DNA of 64,000 nt from Fimbriosthenelais zetlandica (Eukaryota): assembly GCA_977030845.1 (NCBI GenBank), contig OZ365115.1, positions 31,682,001 through 31,746,000 on the forward strand, read 5' to 3'. Both the position numbers and the translations under genes were made by a program. Below are positions 45,323 to 51,127 of this stretch, piece after piece (the stretch's first letter is position 1; every line of letters begins with the position of its first letter). Under the pieces are notes generated by a model. That model saw nothing but the letters and a program-made list of their open reading frames with translations. It did not search any database and was not told the DNA's origin.

Positions 45323-46276
45323 TCTTGCTTAATCAAATCAACAATCATGTTTCCAACATTGTACACAGAAATATACTGAACAGAAGCAATTTGAAATGAA
45401 AAGGATTTTTCCTGGGTTACTTGGAACTTAAATGGCAATATATCTTCGTTCCCATGACATCTTGCTATAGGCCTATTATATACACAGAGCCCACCTGATG
45501 CTTTATCCTGTCGTTACCCGACATCTCTAACATGGTCAAGAGACGTGTCAAATCCAACGACACTGAATCAAGACGTTTAGAAGACGTGGAGATGACGTTT
45601 TGTGCTAGCGGGGCAACTAATTTCCTTTGATGGTTTGGGTATCAGTTGTTAATAGTTTCCCTTGAATGGTGTGCCCCTATTTCTGGTATTTACATATCCT
45701 TGATTTTTGCATGAAAATATGTCACGACCATAGAGGTAACGTAACTCCACCCAGTCGCCACATTTCCTCAAGTGCTCACGGCTTCCGCAGACCCCTCAAA
45801 TCTCTTGCTCTTGACCGCACATGCCGTCCATTGCAGACCCAATCTGCTTTGTGTATTCATTTTGAACATCTATTTTGATTGACGGGAGAATTCCTGGATG
45901 TTTGTGTCTTTACGAATGTTTCTAAAATGCGCGTAATAATGTTTAAATGCAAATTAGGGATTTCAGATATAGACCGATATGTATTATAAGCTACGGCGAT
46001 TCGCTTAGTGAACAAAACTAAAACCGACGCCCATTGAACGAAAAAGAAAAGCAGGTCTAAATTAATTGACACAGGTCAGTCGACGTCGATGTTGCATAAA
46101 TTTCGTGCAATAGCCTAATGGCCCATAATTACCACACAATCTTGAGGCAAATTTCCTCAGGCGAAGATCTCGTACCAGCTTTCTTCATTGTGCTATGCAA
46201 GAACTTGACCTTGGCTCATATATCTTGTATGAGTCCTCGTAGATCTTGTAAAATGGTTCGGTTTGTGTCTTGAGGG

Positions 46277-46559
46277 TTACATATTTGTTTTTTCATTGGT
46301 AAAACTGAAAATCTGTCTATCAAATAAGTAAACTATAATATATATCGACAAAGGAAGGTATACTGTAATATTGTAAATTAAAGGAAAACCTCGACTTCTA
46401 ATGGCATTTGGACAGGAGTCTATTGAACTCTTCTCACATGGAGGTAAGAAATCAAATGAATACTGCATCCGGATAAGGGGTTCAATGGTGGCGCTGCCAT
46501 TTGCGGTGCACTCTCGACCCATGAAGGCAGAAAAACACTCTATTAACTTCTCCCGTTTT
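46277..46559 (-). CDS. Terminal coding exon (module 4 second half plus hydrophobic C-terminus), phase 2 to stop
   Basis: Acceptor cctttccactttccacag|A; KREKLIEC...LPPCEKSSIDSC...FPLIYNITVYLPLSIYIIVYLF...M*, with TAA at 46279-46277. An earlier weak donor and a further exon cannot be excluded. Confidence 0.8.
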
Positions 46560-49500
46560 CTGTGGAAAGTGGAAAGGTAGAATAAATTTATTTTTATTAT
46601 CCTATAGATATATCAGACTAAGTTCCCTATCTTCCCCAGGAAAATAAATCTAGGGTACCATTGGCATATTGAAACTGCATTTTGAATATGACAAACCGAG
46701 GAAAAATACTCACTGCATATTTTCCCTGCTGACAGAGCGAGTGGGAGAACATTTAACCTGATAGGCCTCGTACTTGGTGGGGTATTTATCAAACACCTTC
46801 CGACACAAGTTAAAACTGTTAGAATGTCGCATCATCTTCTTATAACATGGTAAGAAATGCTTATAGTCTGTGGGAGAGAGAGAAAAAACCTTATTCAAGA
46901 TGCTGTTTCGGTGTGACTGATAAAGACAATAACAGTTTATCTAAGAAAACTCAAGTGTGTTTTTCTAGTTGAGTGAAGGCAGAGCCCCTTGAGGGATTTT
47001 TTCCCAGCGGAATCATGAAATTTTCCATTACAATTTTCTTCTTGCGACATGCGTTACAAGTAGTGGAACAACACAATCGTCACAACATTCACAAAGGTTT
47101 CAGTTACAGGCTGAATGCTTTGAGATATAGACTATAGTCTATATCTCAAAGCATTCAGCAACTTCCTCAGGCATTGGGTCTCATACCTAACCGTACAATC
47201 GCTAGGAGGCCATCATAGAACCACAAGTTAAGTGATGCCAGAAAATTACAATTTTGCAAGATCCCAAGGCAAAAGAGAAGAGTACGAACCTGTGAGAGCG
47301 GGACCACACAGATAGTGGGCCACCATGACGATCCGGTGCCACTCGTTCTCAGTGGTATACACTTCCTGTACACCACCTGGACATGCTTCACTTATTGGTG
47401 CCAGGCACCGCTCATACTGCCGGTACGCTCTGTCAAAGAATAATCGAGTCAGATCATGTTTAAATTCAGATTTACAATAATATAAAACCAGTGTACGTGT
47501 ATGGTTTCGTTCATTGAATAAATTACATTTAGAGTTCGATGAAACTTTTGACTGATCCTTAAGGTATAGAAATCAAAACAAACGAGTTGAGCGATAAGCA
47601 CTCATCATCAATTGCGAAAATTAATGAAATTTCATAATATAAAACATATCAAATTCGTCTAAAAATGGATATTAAGAATATGAGAAGAACCTAGTATCGT
47701 ACCTGCACCAGTTGTCTAGCTCAGCTTCGGTTCCCCGGATGATGGCCAACATGCTGTGATACAGCGCCACCTTTGTTACCTGAAAATTATCATAGCACTC
47801 ACGCATGCGCACAGGAAAATCTGGCGAACAGTGCATGGTGTAGGAAAAACCTGCAAAAAGAAAATTATTGATTATATCATAAGGATCTGGACATGATGAA
47901 AATCTTAAAATCTTAAAAATTCAAGATCCATTTATACTGCCCCTTCAACTTACCATTGTATTTAGTCAGTGGAGTGTAAGAACACTTGTCGTTGACACCA
48001 AGTTCTGTAAACTTGGATTTGATGGAAATTGCAAGAGAGAAGTCTGCCAAGTCACTGCCACATGCAGACCGTAATAACCTATCTTCACACTCTATGTACT
48101 CCCTGGCTACCCTAAAAATACATACAGCAATAAAAGGTCATAAATTTAGTCAGCCATTTTGAAAAGTGATGAAACCCATTCAGACTCTCCTTTACTCTTC
48201 TCAATGTATTTTCAGTAAAGCCGTAGGCTTTAATAGTTTGCCTCAACCTCTCACTTTTACCCTTCCCATCCACTGAACCACAGAAGGGAAAGATCTCCAG
48301 CAATGGCTTATTCAATATAGATCAATACCCCTTTTATCGCCCACATCTGACCAAAAACCAACATGGCCACCATCAGCCTGGCCCTGCACCCTGGGAATAA
48401 ATTGGACTTCCTGTCCCTGTCATTGGAGACAAAAGCCCCTCTGATAAACCCTCCCGAATTATGATTTTTACAACTGGCTGCCCTTCTTAAAGGCCATCTT
48501 AAGCGAGGAGGCGTGGAAAAGACCGCAGTGCCTCCTTGAAAGCCGAGCTAAAACTAACAGTTTCAGGTCTGCAATTATTGACTGGTGGGAATCCTTGTGG
48601 GACAGGCTCACTATGGTGTTGTATTATTCTGGGGTTTTTGTCAACTCTTTTACCACAGTTTGATGTAAATTGTAAATAATACGTAAATCTTGTTCTATTT
48701 TATACATCCTACGAATATACTTCACAACAACAACTGCTTTTCGCTTGAAAATAATGATATACATATGCCTATTCTAAACCTCTCCTAGCAGTTCTTAAAG
48801 GAAGTTACCACCAAACCACTTCTTTTTTCACATCGACCCAAGCCATAATTTTCATCATGGTAGGCACAAAACCGAAACTTTTCTTTCAAGGCATGCATGT
48901 CAGAAATTACCTCCCATCCACCTGCCCACCCCACTTTTCCAATCTAGCCATCACTAAATCTGATTTGGTGAGACAAGTAGTGGTGATGGGGGAGCAGAGC
49001 GATTTCTGACAGTTCTGGCTATTAAGGAACACTGGCCATTACGACACCTGGCGGCTAATCTCCCCCTTAAAGTGGATGTGAGGCATGCCGGGAAAGAGCA
49101 AAAGGCATTTCCGGTTGGCGGGGAGAAGAGGCTTATGGGTCGCCAGGGAAACAATGTGTCCAGAGACCGCATATGCCTGGGCCGAGGGGCAAAAATAGGT
49201 AAAACGTGACGGGAAACTGGGAGCATATATAGGGTGGGTCAAACTATGAAGAGGAGGAAATTATGCTCCTGCAAGAAAAGCGGTGAATGGAGTGAGGTCA
49301 AGAGGCAATTAAAGCAGCAAGATTGTATACATTGGTCCAATTATTCATATCTGCTCTGTTCAGTAAATTGAACAAGGAAATATTTCGGTGCAATGCTAGG
49401 GGGAAGATACTACATTTGTGAGGGAACATAAAATCCCCTGAGTCAGAGACTTTTCTTTTATCTATATCCTCAGTGTGGGGAGGTGATGGCTGGGTTTCTA

Positions 49501-51127
49501 TAGCTTGAAGGATGTCTTTTAGCTCCATGACTAATATTCAGCCTCTACCTTGTCTTCCTACTGTATACACCTCTCCCCAATTACTACCTTTCCTTCCATT
49601 TTTCAAACTGCCCACCCTTCTCCCAGTCCGCCATATTGTGAGTCCCTCATTGATATTAAAAGAGTCACTCAGCAGCTGAAGGGAGTAATTATACGCTGGA
49701 CAATCATATTATGCTAATTCCATAGAGGCCTGATTTCTCAGGGAGGGTGAGTGGCTGCAGTAGCAGCTGTCAGGGTGAGTTAGCCATGAGCTGGCTTGGA
49801 ACTTACACCGGTACAAGTTCAGAATGCAAACTAGATTTCTTGCCACACTTTCATATTTCTTTAACAATTACCAGTGAAGGCTATTCATGGAACTTTTCAA
49901 AATGTATTCACTACGGCACCTTGGACCAATCAATTGTATCAACCCAAAAGTAACTGATCCTGACAGTTGAATATTTTAAAGAACATTAAATGCCAATGTA
50001 TGGGTGATTGTTAGGCAATGGTGAAAGCCTGACTAATTTGCGTGTTTACTTGTAGAGACTCTGTTGGATAAAGAGTTAAGCCTTTTATGGTGGACCATAC
50101 CCAGAGGAATCTCTGTAAATGGCACCTCGTACAGCTGAGGTGTTGGGATGGTTCGCTTTATATCACATCTTATGGTACCTTGGAGACATATGCACCAGTT
50201 TGACCTACATGGAGGATATTCATGCTCTGGTGATATATGTCTACATTAATAGGAACATGAATTTCAATTTGCAATATGCCACCAGTCTCCATCCGGAAAC
50301 ATCCTGAAAAACGCTAAAAGAAAACAGGTACACTATATAAATTCTTTATGACACCAGTCAATTCACATAAAAGAATATGTAGGGATAAACGTGATTTCTA
50401 TTACTATAGGACTTACATGCACATGTCGAAAACTCCTGACTCTGTCTGCAGCTCCATGAGACTGTAACATCCTCGAAACAGGGGGTTAGCCTCCCCAGAC
50501 TGAGACACGAGGCAAGGAAGGTTATGTAGGGTATCTGTAACACGAGGCAATTAAGGCAAATTATGTAGGGTATACATAAAGATAAAAAAATAAATTATAA
50601 AACACATTTTAGAGATAAACATTAGTTTTGGGGATGGATGTGGGTAAGGTTACTTACTCTGCTTTCTGTCATTACAAGTTTTTGCCACAAGTCTCTGAGC
50701 CAGTTTAAGACTATTAGCCGAGTCTTGTATTCTGATGTTACAGGTTTCATACAGTGCCTTGATGCAAACTATCCACTTCTGATAGGCACTGAAACAAAAA
50801 TTAACAATGAGAACAATTGAACAACATATCAAGTGCAAAGGCATATAACATCTGGGGGTTTGCAAGTCATCATTAAGTCAGCCCTATATTCCCTTACTTC
50901 AAGTGACCACACGTATAGGATCAAGGGGGTGTCTTACGAATACTACATGTGTAAGATGGTGTTGCCATACCTGCATATGGTTTCTAGTTTTTCCTCTGTG
51001 GGACTGTTGAGTAAGGTGGAGTAAAAGGCGCCATCATGAAGCTTGGCAACTTCTGCATAGCAGATCTTTTGTTCATCCCGCCAAGTGGAGGTGTTAGTAC
51101 ATGGCGTCCTCACCACAATGTCATCTC
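46277..51127 (-). CDS. Spliced 8-exon gene (5' end incomplete) encoding a Cys-rich (4 x 6-Cys module) membrane-anchored protein, DUF19/CPG4-like
   Basis: Exons 51127-50971, 50788-50658, 50534-50417, 48111-47954, 47850-47703, 47429-47290, 46867-46714 and 46559-46277 total 1289 nt; with 1 nt from an upstream exon this is 430 codons including TAA. All introns are GT..AG (182, 123, 2305, 103, 273, 422, 154 nt). Translation: (x)DDIVVRTPCTNTSTWRDEQKICYAEVAKLHDGAFYSTLLNSPTEEKLETICSAYQKWIVCIKALYETCNIRIQDSANSLKLAQRLVAKTCNDRKQNTLHNLPCLVSQSGEANPLFRGCYSLMELQTESGVFDMCMVAREYIECEDRLLRSACGSDLADFSLAISIKSKFTELGVNDKCSYTPLTKYNGFSYTMHCSPDFPVRMRECYDNFQVTKVALYHSMLAIIRGTEAELDNWCRAYRQYERCLAPISEACPGGVQEVYTTENEWHRIVMVAHYLCGPALTDYKHFLPCYKKMMRHSNSFNLCRKVFDKYPTKYEAYQVKCSPTRSVSRENMQKREKLIECFSAFMGRECTANGSATIEPLIRMQYSFDFLPPCEKSSIDSCPNAIRSRGFPLIYNITVYLPLSIYIIVYLFDRQIFSFTNEKTNM*. 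The family name is inferred from the Cys pattern only. Confidence 0.9.
46714..46867 (-). CDS. Internal coding exon (module 4, first half), phase 1 to 2
   Basis: Acceptor ttttttctctctctcccacag|AC, donor ATGCA|gtgagt; 154 nt; YKHFLPC...VKCSPTRSVSRENM, 3 Cys. Confidence 0.85.
47110..47159. repeat. Perfect 50-bp palindrome (25-bp arms, no spacer) in an intron
   Basis: GCTGAATGCTTTGAGATATAGACTA|TAGTCTATATCTCAAAGCATTCAGC equals its own reverse complement (checked base by base). Confidence 0.97.
47290..47429 (-). CDS. Internal coding exon (module 3, second half), phase 2 to 1
   Basis: Acceptor ttattctttgacag|A, donor ACAG|gttcgt (weaker); 140 nt; AYRQYERC...HYLCGPALT, 3 Cys. Confidence 0.88.
47703..47850 (-). 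CDS. Internal coding exon (module 3, first half), phase 1 to 2
   Basis: Acceptor aattttctttttgcag|GT, donor TGCAG|gtacga; 148 nt; FSYTMHC...ELDNWC, 3 Cys; aligns with exon 50971-51127 (CY..., A-F/L-Y-x-S/T, TE..L...C). Confidence 0.92.
47954..48111 (-). CDS. Internal coding exon (module 2, second half), phase 2 to 1
   Basis: Acceptor gtatgtatttttag|G, donor AATG|gtaagt; 158 nt; VAREYIECEDRLLRSACG...DKCSYTPLTKYN, 3 Cys. Confidence 0.92.
50417..50534 (-). CDS. Internal coding exon (module 2, first half), phase 1 to 2
   Basis: Acceptor ttgcctcgtgttacag|AT, donor TGCAT|gtaagt; 118 nt; TLHNLPC...GVFDMC, 3 Cys. Confidence 0.85.
50500..50573. repeat. Imperfect 35/39-bp tandem duplication spanning a splice acceptor
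   Basis: ctgagacacgaggcaaggaagg----ttatgtagggtat (50500-50534) vs ctgtaacacgaggcaattaaggcaaattatgtagggtat (50535-50573). Confidence 0.88.
50658..50788 (-). CDS. Internal coding exon (module 1, second half), phase 2 to 1
   Basis: Acceptor aatttttgtttcag|T, donor CAGA|gtaagt; 131 nt; AYQKWIVC...KTCNDRKQ, 3 Cys; lies inside track ORF 50650..50865. Confidence 0.92.
50971..51127 (-). CDS. Internal coding exon (module 1, first half), phase 1 to 2
   Basis: Acceptor cacttttatacatcgattag|GA, donor TGCAG|gtatgg; 157 nt; DDIVVRTPC...EKLETIC, 3 Cys. Confidence 0.9.

Follow-up and report, generated by a model that had tools for sequence, protein, structure and literature searches.

We analyzed a gene on the minus strand (51127-46275) of a 64,000-nt stretch of the Fimbriosthenelais zetlandica genome (G000:C25:31682001-31746000; host genome of 447 Mb in 79 contigs), which we refer to as the window and whose positions are used throughout. 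On the whole, we consider it quite likely that this is a real, spliced gene for an anchored helical protein rich in cysteine (Cys), which has a DUF19/CPG4-like fold and belongs to an unnamed, divergent family. DUF19 is a secreted 12-Cys domain of nematodes and CPG4 is the chondroitin proteoglycan 4 domain. The gene had been proposed from the DNA letters only. This original prediction described it as missed by the list of open reading frames (ORFs) and assigned it to the DUF19/CPG4 group. The former is true, but reflects only that spliced genes are invisible to a prokaryote-style list of ORFs. The latter can be kept for the kind of fold, i.e., modules 3 and 4 of the protein have such proteins as structural neighbors with template modeling (TM) scores of up to 0.57, but had to be given up for Pfam membership, since the respective cut-offs are not reached.

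The spliced gene and its relatives

A script-based rebuild of the model joins eight exons (E1-E8, Table 1) via seven introns, all of them with GT...AG ends. The spliced frame comprises 428 sense codons plus the stop (429 open codons in the original prediction) and encodes the expected 25 Cys with a per-exon distribution of 3/3/3/3/3/3/3/4. Introns 1, 3, 5 and 7 are in phase 2, each located one residue past the third Cys of its module; introns 2, 4 and 6 as well as the start of E1 are in phase 1. That is, each 6-Cys module corresponds to a symmetrical, phase-1-bounded exon pair with a phase-2 intron inside, a pattern that is the signature of a two-exon unit having been duplicated in tandem. Across the phase-2 intron, the C-x8-C spacing predicted for three modules was recovered in modules 1-3 (ETIC/S AYQKWIVC, FDMC/M VAREYIEC, DNWC/R AYRQYERC), with x19 instead of x8 in module 4. 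The full series of Cys gaps reads 12/28/8/7/21 in module 1 and 10/29/8/7/24 in module 3.

The model is supported by P0004, a 481-aa homolog of another species, which is encoded uninterrupted on an intronless 1872-nt Logan contig with untranslated regions that we infer to be a transcript. The spliced gene product aligns with P0004 with 39.7% identity over 368 residues (BLASTP, E 1.4e-110), and E1 falls within this single alignment from residue 22 onward. 24 of the 25 Cys are aligned, no indel is placed at any of the seven junctions (MAFFT), and 20 of the 23 gaps between shared Cys have the same length in both proteins. Given this E-value and the identical gaps, Cys framework and splice pattern are far beyond chance, and the expectation of a real gene having homologs with this Cys pattern is confirmed.

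A genomic contig from a closer relative (L015) carries exons 6-8 (for amino acid identities see Table 1). Here, the DNA is conserved in the exons only and not in the introns, while positions and phases of acceptors and donors are identical. Over these exons, the proportion of nonsynonymous differences (pN) is 0.22 vs. 0.75 for synonymous ones (pS, saturated), which argues for purifying selection on the predicted frame. Judging from these comparisons, the gene is an intact, conserved protein-coding gene of animals that is under purifying selection.

An exhaustive HMMER search with exon 8 yielded 11 true relatives. Two further matches, the Ig-repeat protein P0002 and P0011, were discarded, since only the hydrophobic tail was matched and this in repeated stretches. 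The only relative bearing a name is the hypothetical protein HELRODRAFT_165246 of the leech Helobdella robusta (T1EWH6; P0010 in our data), which matches modules 3-4 of the gene product with 37.8% identity over 209 aa (E 1e-46) and shares their Cys framework and motif; the remaining relatives stem from metagenome or run assemblies. This one named relative by itself would point to an annelid as the probable source of the gene. Word-indexed protein searches with P0004 and with our alignments A1 and A3 returned either P0004 itself plus one fragment or nothing; this collection evidently contains few full-length relatives. Five of the last-exon relatives (P0005, P0007, P0008, P0009, P0012) are GC-rich and Ala/Pro-rich sequences within JGI/IMG, ENA and Logan assemblies. 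They appear to be contigs of host animals within metagenomes, whose genes were predicted by prokaryotic gene finders.

Three paralogs are found on the same chromosome, all of them with the same exon order and the same arrangement of Cys, intron and x8-Cys. One is a tandem paralog on the same strand, located 16-27 kb past the end of the window (C25:31762385-31773511; loci L006 and L007). It comprises, in unchanged order, exons that resemble exons 4 to 8, and some 7 kb upstream there is one more 'second-half' exon. The exon resembling exon 4 encodes a polybasic KRVRKRRC directly ahead of the last Cys. The other two paralogs (C25:~10.177 Mb and C25:~18.265 Mb) are closer to the tandem paralog than to the gene under study, as they share the ending DPFYLKFKYKPDCKLH.

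E1 starts in phase 1 and has no in-frame ATG; thus at least one upstream exon is missing and the model is 5'-incomplete. Scanning positions 51128-60000 on the minus strand for ATG-started hydrophobic ORFs with a phase-1 GT donor leaves a sole instance, which we list as candidate signal-peptide exon in Table 1.

Table 1. Features of the gene model within the window, with the evidence for each.
Feature	Position	Strand	Evidence or detail
Candidate signal-peptide exon	52409..52538	-	ATG at 52538 or 52523; phase-1 GT donor 52412/52411 or 52409/52408
Exon 1 (module 1, first half; 3 Cys; NTS sequon 51095-51087)	50971..51127	-	script model; AG acceptor precedes
Exon 2 (module 1, second half; 3 Cys)	50658..50788	-	script model; P0004 alignment
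Exon 3 (module 2, first half; 3 Cys)	50417..50534	-	tblastn with P0004, E 2e-5
Exon 4 (module 2, second half; 3 Cys)	47954..48111	-	tblastn with P0004, 48% identity; paralog exons align
Exon 5 (module 3, first half; 3 Cys)	47703..47850	-	tblastn matches of P0004 and Helobdella P0010
Exon 6 (module 3, second half; 3 Cys)	47290..47429	-	L015 ortholog, 70% amino acid identity, identical splice phases; paralog matches
Exon 7 (module 4, first half; 3 Cys)	46714..46867	-	L015 ortholog, 79% amino acid identity
Exon 8 (module 4, second half; 4 Cys; motif PLIRMQYSFDFLPPC)	46275..46559	-	HMMER relatives; L015, 60% amino acid identity over 80 aa
NGS sequon (exon 8)	46501-46493	-	
Hydrophobic tail, 22 residues (exon 8)	46390-46325	-	
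Stop codon (exon 8)	46279-46277	-	

The introns 1-7 have lengths of 182, 123, 2305, 103, 273, 422 and 154 nt, i.e., intron 3 (48112-50416) is roughly 5 to 20 times as long as the other six. It is single-copy at the sensitivity of a DNA search against the own genome and thus is not an obvious repeat insertion. Within intron 6, positions 47110-47159 form a perfect 50-nt palindrome of two 25-nt arms (GCTGAATGCTTTGAGATATAGACTA / TAGTCTATATCTCAAAGCATTCAGC; 100% complementary, no spacer), which might form a hairpin or be what is left of a small mobile element.

Sequence family and predicted fold

The most conserved stretch of the family is encoded by the last exon and reads KLIxCYxxFxxxxCGxxxRxxIxPLIRMxYSFDFLPPC. 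Collinear full-length similarity and a conserved Cys framework connect the gene product with T1EWH6 and P0004, which share the motif PLIRMQYSFDFLPPC. By its sequence, it is a member of a small, unnamed and divergent family with this motif as hallmark.

We compared this family with Pfam using the gathering cut-offs of DUF19 (PF01579, 23.2 bits), CPG4 (PF15481, 32.7), RGM_N (24.2) and NRN1 (27). A scan of the single exons gave no match. For DUF19, no match was found to any exon, nor to P0004, P0010, P0013 or their halves, up to an E-value of 10, and PF01579 and PF15481, when searched against all six frames of the complete genome, returned nothing at this locus. CPG4 matches P0004 over module 3 (P0004 residues 255-310, profile positions 3-50) with 12.7-13.6 bits (E 0.1-0.19), i.e., below its cut-off. 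A profile search with alignment A3 revealed no bridging protein that carries DUF19 or CPG4. The sequence is too divergent for membership of either Pfam family.

Predicted folds show a different picture. The P0004 residues 241-452 (modules 3 and 4, alignment A3), which carry 12 framework Cys, are modeled by AlphaFold2 as an all-helical domain with a predicted local distance difference test (pLDDT) value of 86.1 and a predicted TM score (pTM) of 0.79, as was anticipated by the original prediction, which expected a helical bundle. Among the top 30 Foldseek matches in the AlphaFold DB clusters are mostly DUF19 and CPG4 domain-containing proteins, the others being for the most part secreted proteins without a name from nematodes, arthropods, oyster and Lingula. 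All have probabilities of about 1.0, E-values from 5.6e-3 to 7e-2 and TM scores of 0.4-0.57 at 12-17% identity; the highest TM score is that of the oyster protein K1PQZ1 (TM 0.57, root-mean-square deviation of 4.5 over 190 columns). When the ESM Atlas is searched by shape, a DUF19 cluster comes first (TM 0.56), followed by 0.38 for the next row. The neighbors from Swiss-Prot are the C. elegans proteins F44E2.4, AAIM-1, UPF0376 and EXC-13. Finally, language-model features place CPG4/DUF19 clusters among the neighbors at 0.75-0.78, which is a weak pointer. Like a DUF19 domain, modules 3 and 4 thus form an all-helical 12-Cys domain that is probably extracellular; here one prediction is compared with another, with respect to fold and Cys number rather than disulfide connectivity. 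We conclude that modules 3 and 4 probably constitute a compact helical domain with a DUF19/CPG4-like fold.

One may go further and regard the protein as a true though divergent DUF19/CPG4 member, i.e., as two tandem 12-Cys DUF19 domains. Beside the structural and language-model neighbors, this is suggested by the CPG4 match over module 3 and by the similar Cys gaps of modules 1 and 3. On the other hand, the gathering thresholds are not reached by the exons, P0004, P0010 or P0013, the A3 profile search provides no bridge between the families, and the model of the N-terminal half is of low confidence. We therefore consider such membership unlikely.

The opposite view is that the likeness is convergent, such that an unrelated, lineage-specific family of helical Cys-rich proteins matches generic disulfide-stapled helical bundles. 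The TM scores and identities are indeed low, there is no significant sequence link to the Pfam families, and within the PDB no credible solved relative was found by sequence search, by Foldseek (best E 0.77) or by VIA-align (best Z 5.3, which is within the generic helical range). Yet, the matches are strongly enriched for secreted Cys-rich proteins of invertebrates rather than being a mixture of helical folds. This also shows in Swiss-Prot, where C. elegans Cys-rich proteins obtain probabilities of 0.85-1.0 vs. less than 0.2 for unrelated helical proteins such as nuclear receptors and TDO. Pure convergence is thus quite improbable in our view.

A helical, Cys-rich and probably anchored protein also recalls the co-receptor domain families of GFR-alpha/GAS1, RGM or neuritin, which are attached via glycosylphosphatidylinositol (GPI). 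RGM_N (15.5-17 bits, E 0.007-0.02) and NRN1 (14.3 bits, E 0.047) do match over C-x8-C-x7-C. These scores are, however, far below the cut-offs and refer to about 25 residues, P0004 and the other relatives have no Pfam match to the GDNF-receptor, and the PDB structures that exist for GFR-alpha and RGM are not among the Foldseek or VIA-align matches. We rejected this identity, which is hardly conceivable given the sub-threshold scores and the missing fold match. An unnamed divergent family with a DUF19/CPG4-like fold hence remains our preferred reading.

Proposed anchoring and role

Both predicted sequons, NTS and NGS, as well as the hydrophobic tail were found (Table 1), and the protein is probably extracellular, in line with what was claimed. 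P0004 has a hydrophobic leader at its N-terminus; secretion of the gene product via the missing signal-peptide exon is proposed on this ground. The homologs with complete C-terminus (P0003, P0004, P0007, P0008, P0012) end in a short hydrophobic stretch and have no cytoplasmic domain, which favors a GPI signal. GPI anchoring would call for a signal peptide, for which the upstream exon is a candidate, and for a C-terminal signal composed of a small-residue omega site, a spacer and a hydrophobic end; a hydrophobic tail without cytoplasmic domain is present here and in the five homologs.

Based on this, the following model can be drawn. The eight exons would encode four alpha-helical 6-Cys modules, derived from tandem duplication of the two-exon unit. 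When completed by the signal-peptide exon, the product would be roughly 470 aa long, extracellular and presumably N-glycosylated. Modules 3 and 4 would pack as one compact, disulfide-stapled helical domain with the fold predicted for DUF19/CPG4, and the short hydrophobic segment at the C-terminus would tether the protein to the membrane, with a GPI-attachment signal being likelier than a transmembrane helix. No match to an enzyme family or catalytic motif was found, which points to binding or scaffolding; the protein would thus most likely serve as a rigid binding or scaffold protein at the cell surface. A receptor, co-receptor or immune role is speculation.

Several observations weigh against this picture. 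The fold was predicted for the homolog P0004 as proxy and not for the gene's own protein, the Foldseek E-values and TM scores given above are modest, and both sides of the comparison are predicted, where helical bundles may match easily. Modules 1 and 2 have pLDDT values below 50 in the full-length AlphaFold2 model; for these modules no good alignment was obtained, since MAFFT repeatedly stacked exons 1-3 onto later modules. An hhalign comparison of the two halves finds the C-x8-C-x7-C motif as their sole link (E 0.08), which did not bear out an internal duplication of the two protein halves. At the sequence level, the lack of a DUF19 match and the low CPG4 score speak for distance to both families. 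The gene has 14 residues beyond its hydrophobic tail, such that a single-pass transmembrane anchor is possible as well. The signal-peptide exon (52538-52409) is a candidate, and no sequencing runs for RNA support are listed for either the whole locus or exon 8 alone. The comparative evidence for the gene is nevertheless strong.

Evolutionary reading and comparison with known systems

In terms of annotation, the result is a sound gene with three paralogs. It represents a divergent, probably membrane-anchored four-module variant of known but poorly understood invertebrate Cys-rich proteins. The periodic pattern of exon phases suggests a 6-Cys two-exon unit as the building block of the 12-Cys domain, and a gene structure that still shows its duplication unit would hint at how the domain was constructed. 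This is a tidy evolutionary point but no surprising one, and it opens no long-standing question. A non-nematode, membrane-tethered relative with four modules would furthermore widen the range of DUF19/CPG4 across animal groups, and a cell-surface form would be easier to use in tests for binding partners.

A broader scenario sees here a lophotrochozoan family of membrane-anchored tandem DUF19-like proteins, whose periodic exons keep the ancestral 6-Cys two-exon unit, as part of one protostome superfamily. We offer this as a tentative idea that is rather unlikely at present. If true, this unit would be the source of the nematode 12-Cys DUF19/CPG4 domain, and DUF19, CPG4, UPF0376, AAIM-1-like and possibly the 27 kDa hemolymph proteins would form one ancient protostome superfamily of surface or secreted binding proteins.

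To our knowledge, DUF19/CPG4-type proteins are a large secreted group for which neither a solved structure nor a biochemical function is known. The gene product resembles DUF19 proteins in being all-helical, Cys-rich and probably extracellular, and superposition of one module pair (~190 aa, 12-13 Cys) with predicted DUF19 proteins gives TM scores of 0.50-0.56. In contrast to these, it is twice as large due to its four modules, probably membrane-tethered by the hydrophobic tail at its C-terminus, has no Pfam match and shows its own hallmark motif. Moreover, its relatives were found in an annelid and in metagenome or transcriptome sources, not in nematodes. C. elegans has 51 DUF19 genes (PF01579) with products of 140-220 aa, 42 of them with signal peptide (PMC3534327), and 14/51 are induced by infection (PMC3534327).

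The likeness to CPG4 consists of the weak sequence match of module 3 and of a CPG4 protein among the fold matches; the score is in contrast more than clearly short of the cut-off. A Ser-Gly region for glycosaminoglycan attachment was not seen, where no dedicated search was made.

AAIM-1 (Q5WRS0) and EXC-13 (O01454) are secreted and are structural neighbors within Swiss-Prot (probability 0.99 and 0.63, respectively, TM 0.41-0.43); sequence similarity of the two to the family was not detected. AAIM-1 acts in the gut lumen in microbial adhesion and invasion (PMC8806185), and knock-down of EXC-13 distorts the excretory canal, a luminal tube (PMC6505153). Both were called nematode-specific and without known domains by the respective authors (PMC8806185, PMC6505153). 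Any transfer of function from AAIM-1, EXC-13 or the C. elegans DUF19 proteins would be a loose analogy.

The one named relative, Helobdella T1EWH6, is uncharacterized. Its deposited model of 357 aa differs from the gene product by the absence of modules 1-2, such that the gene model is probably incomplete. As Cys framework and motif agree in modules 3-4, T1EWH6 is nevertheless a true member of the family.

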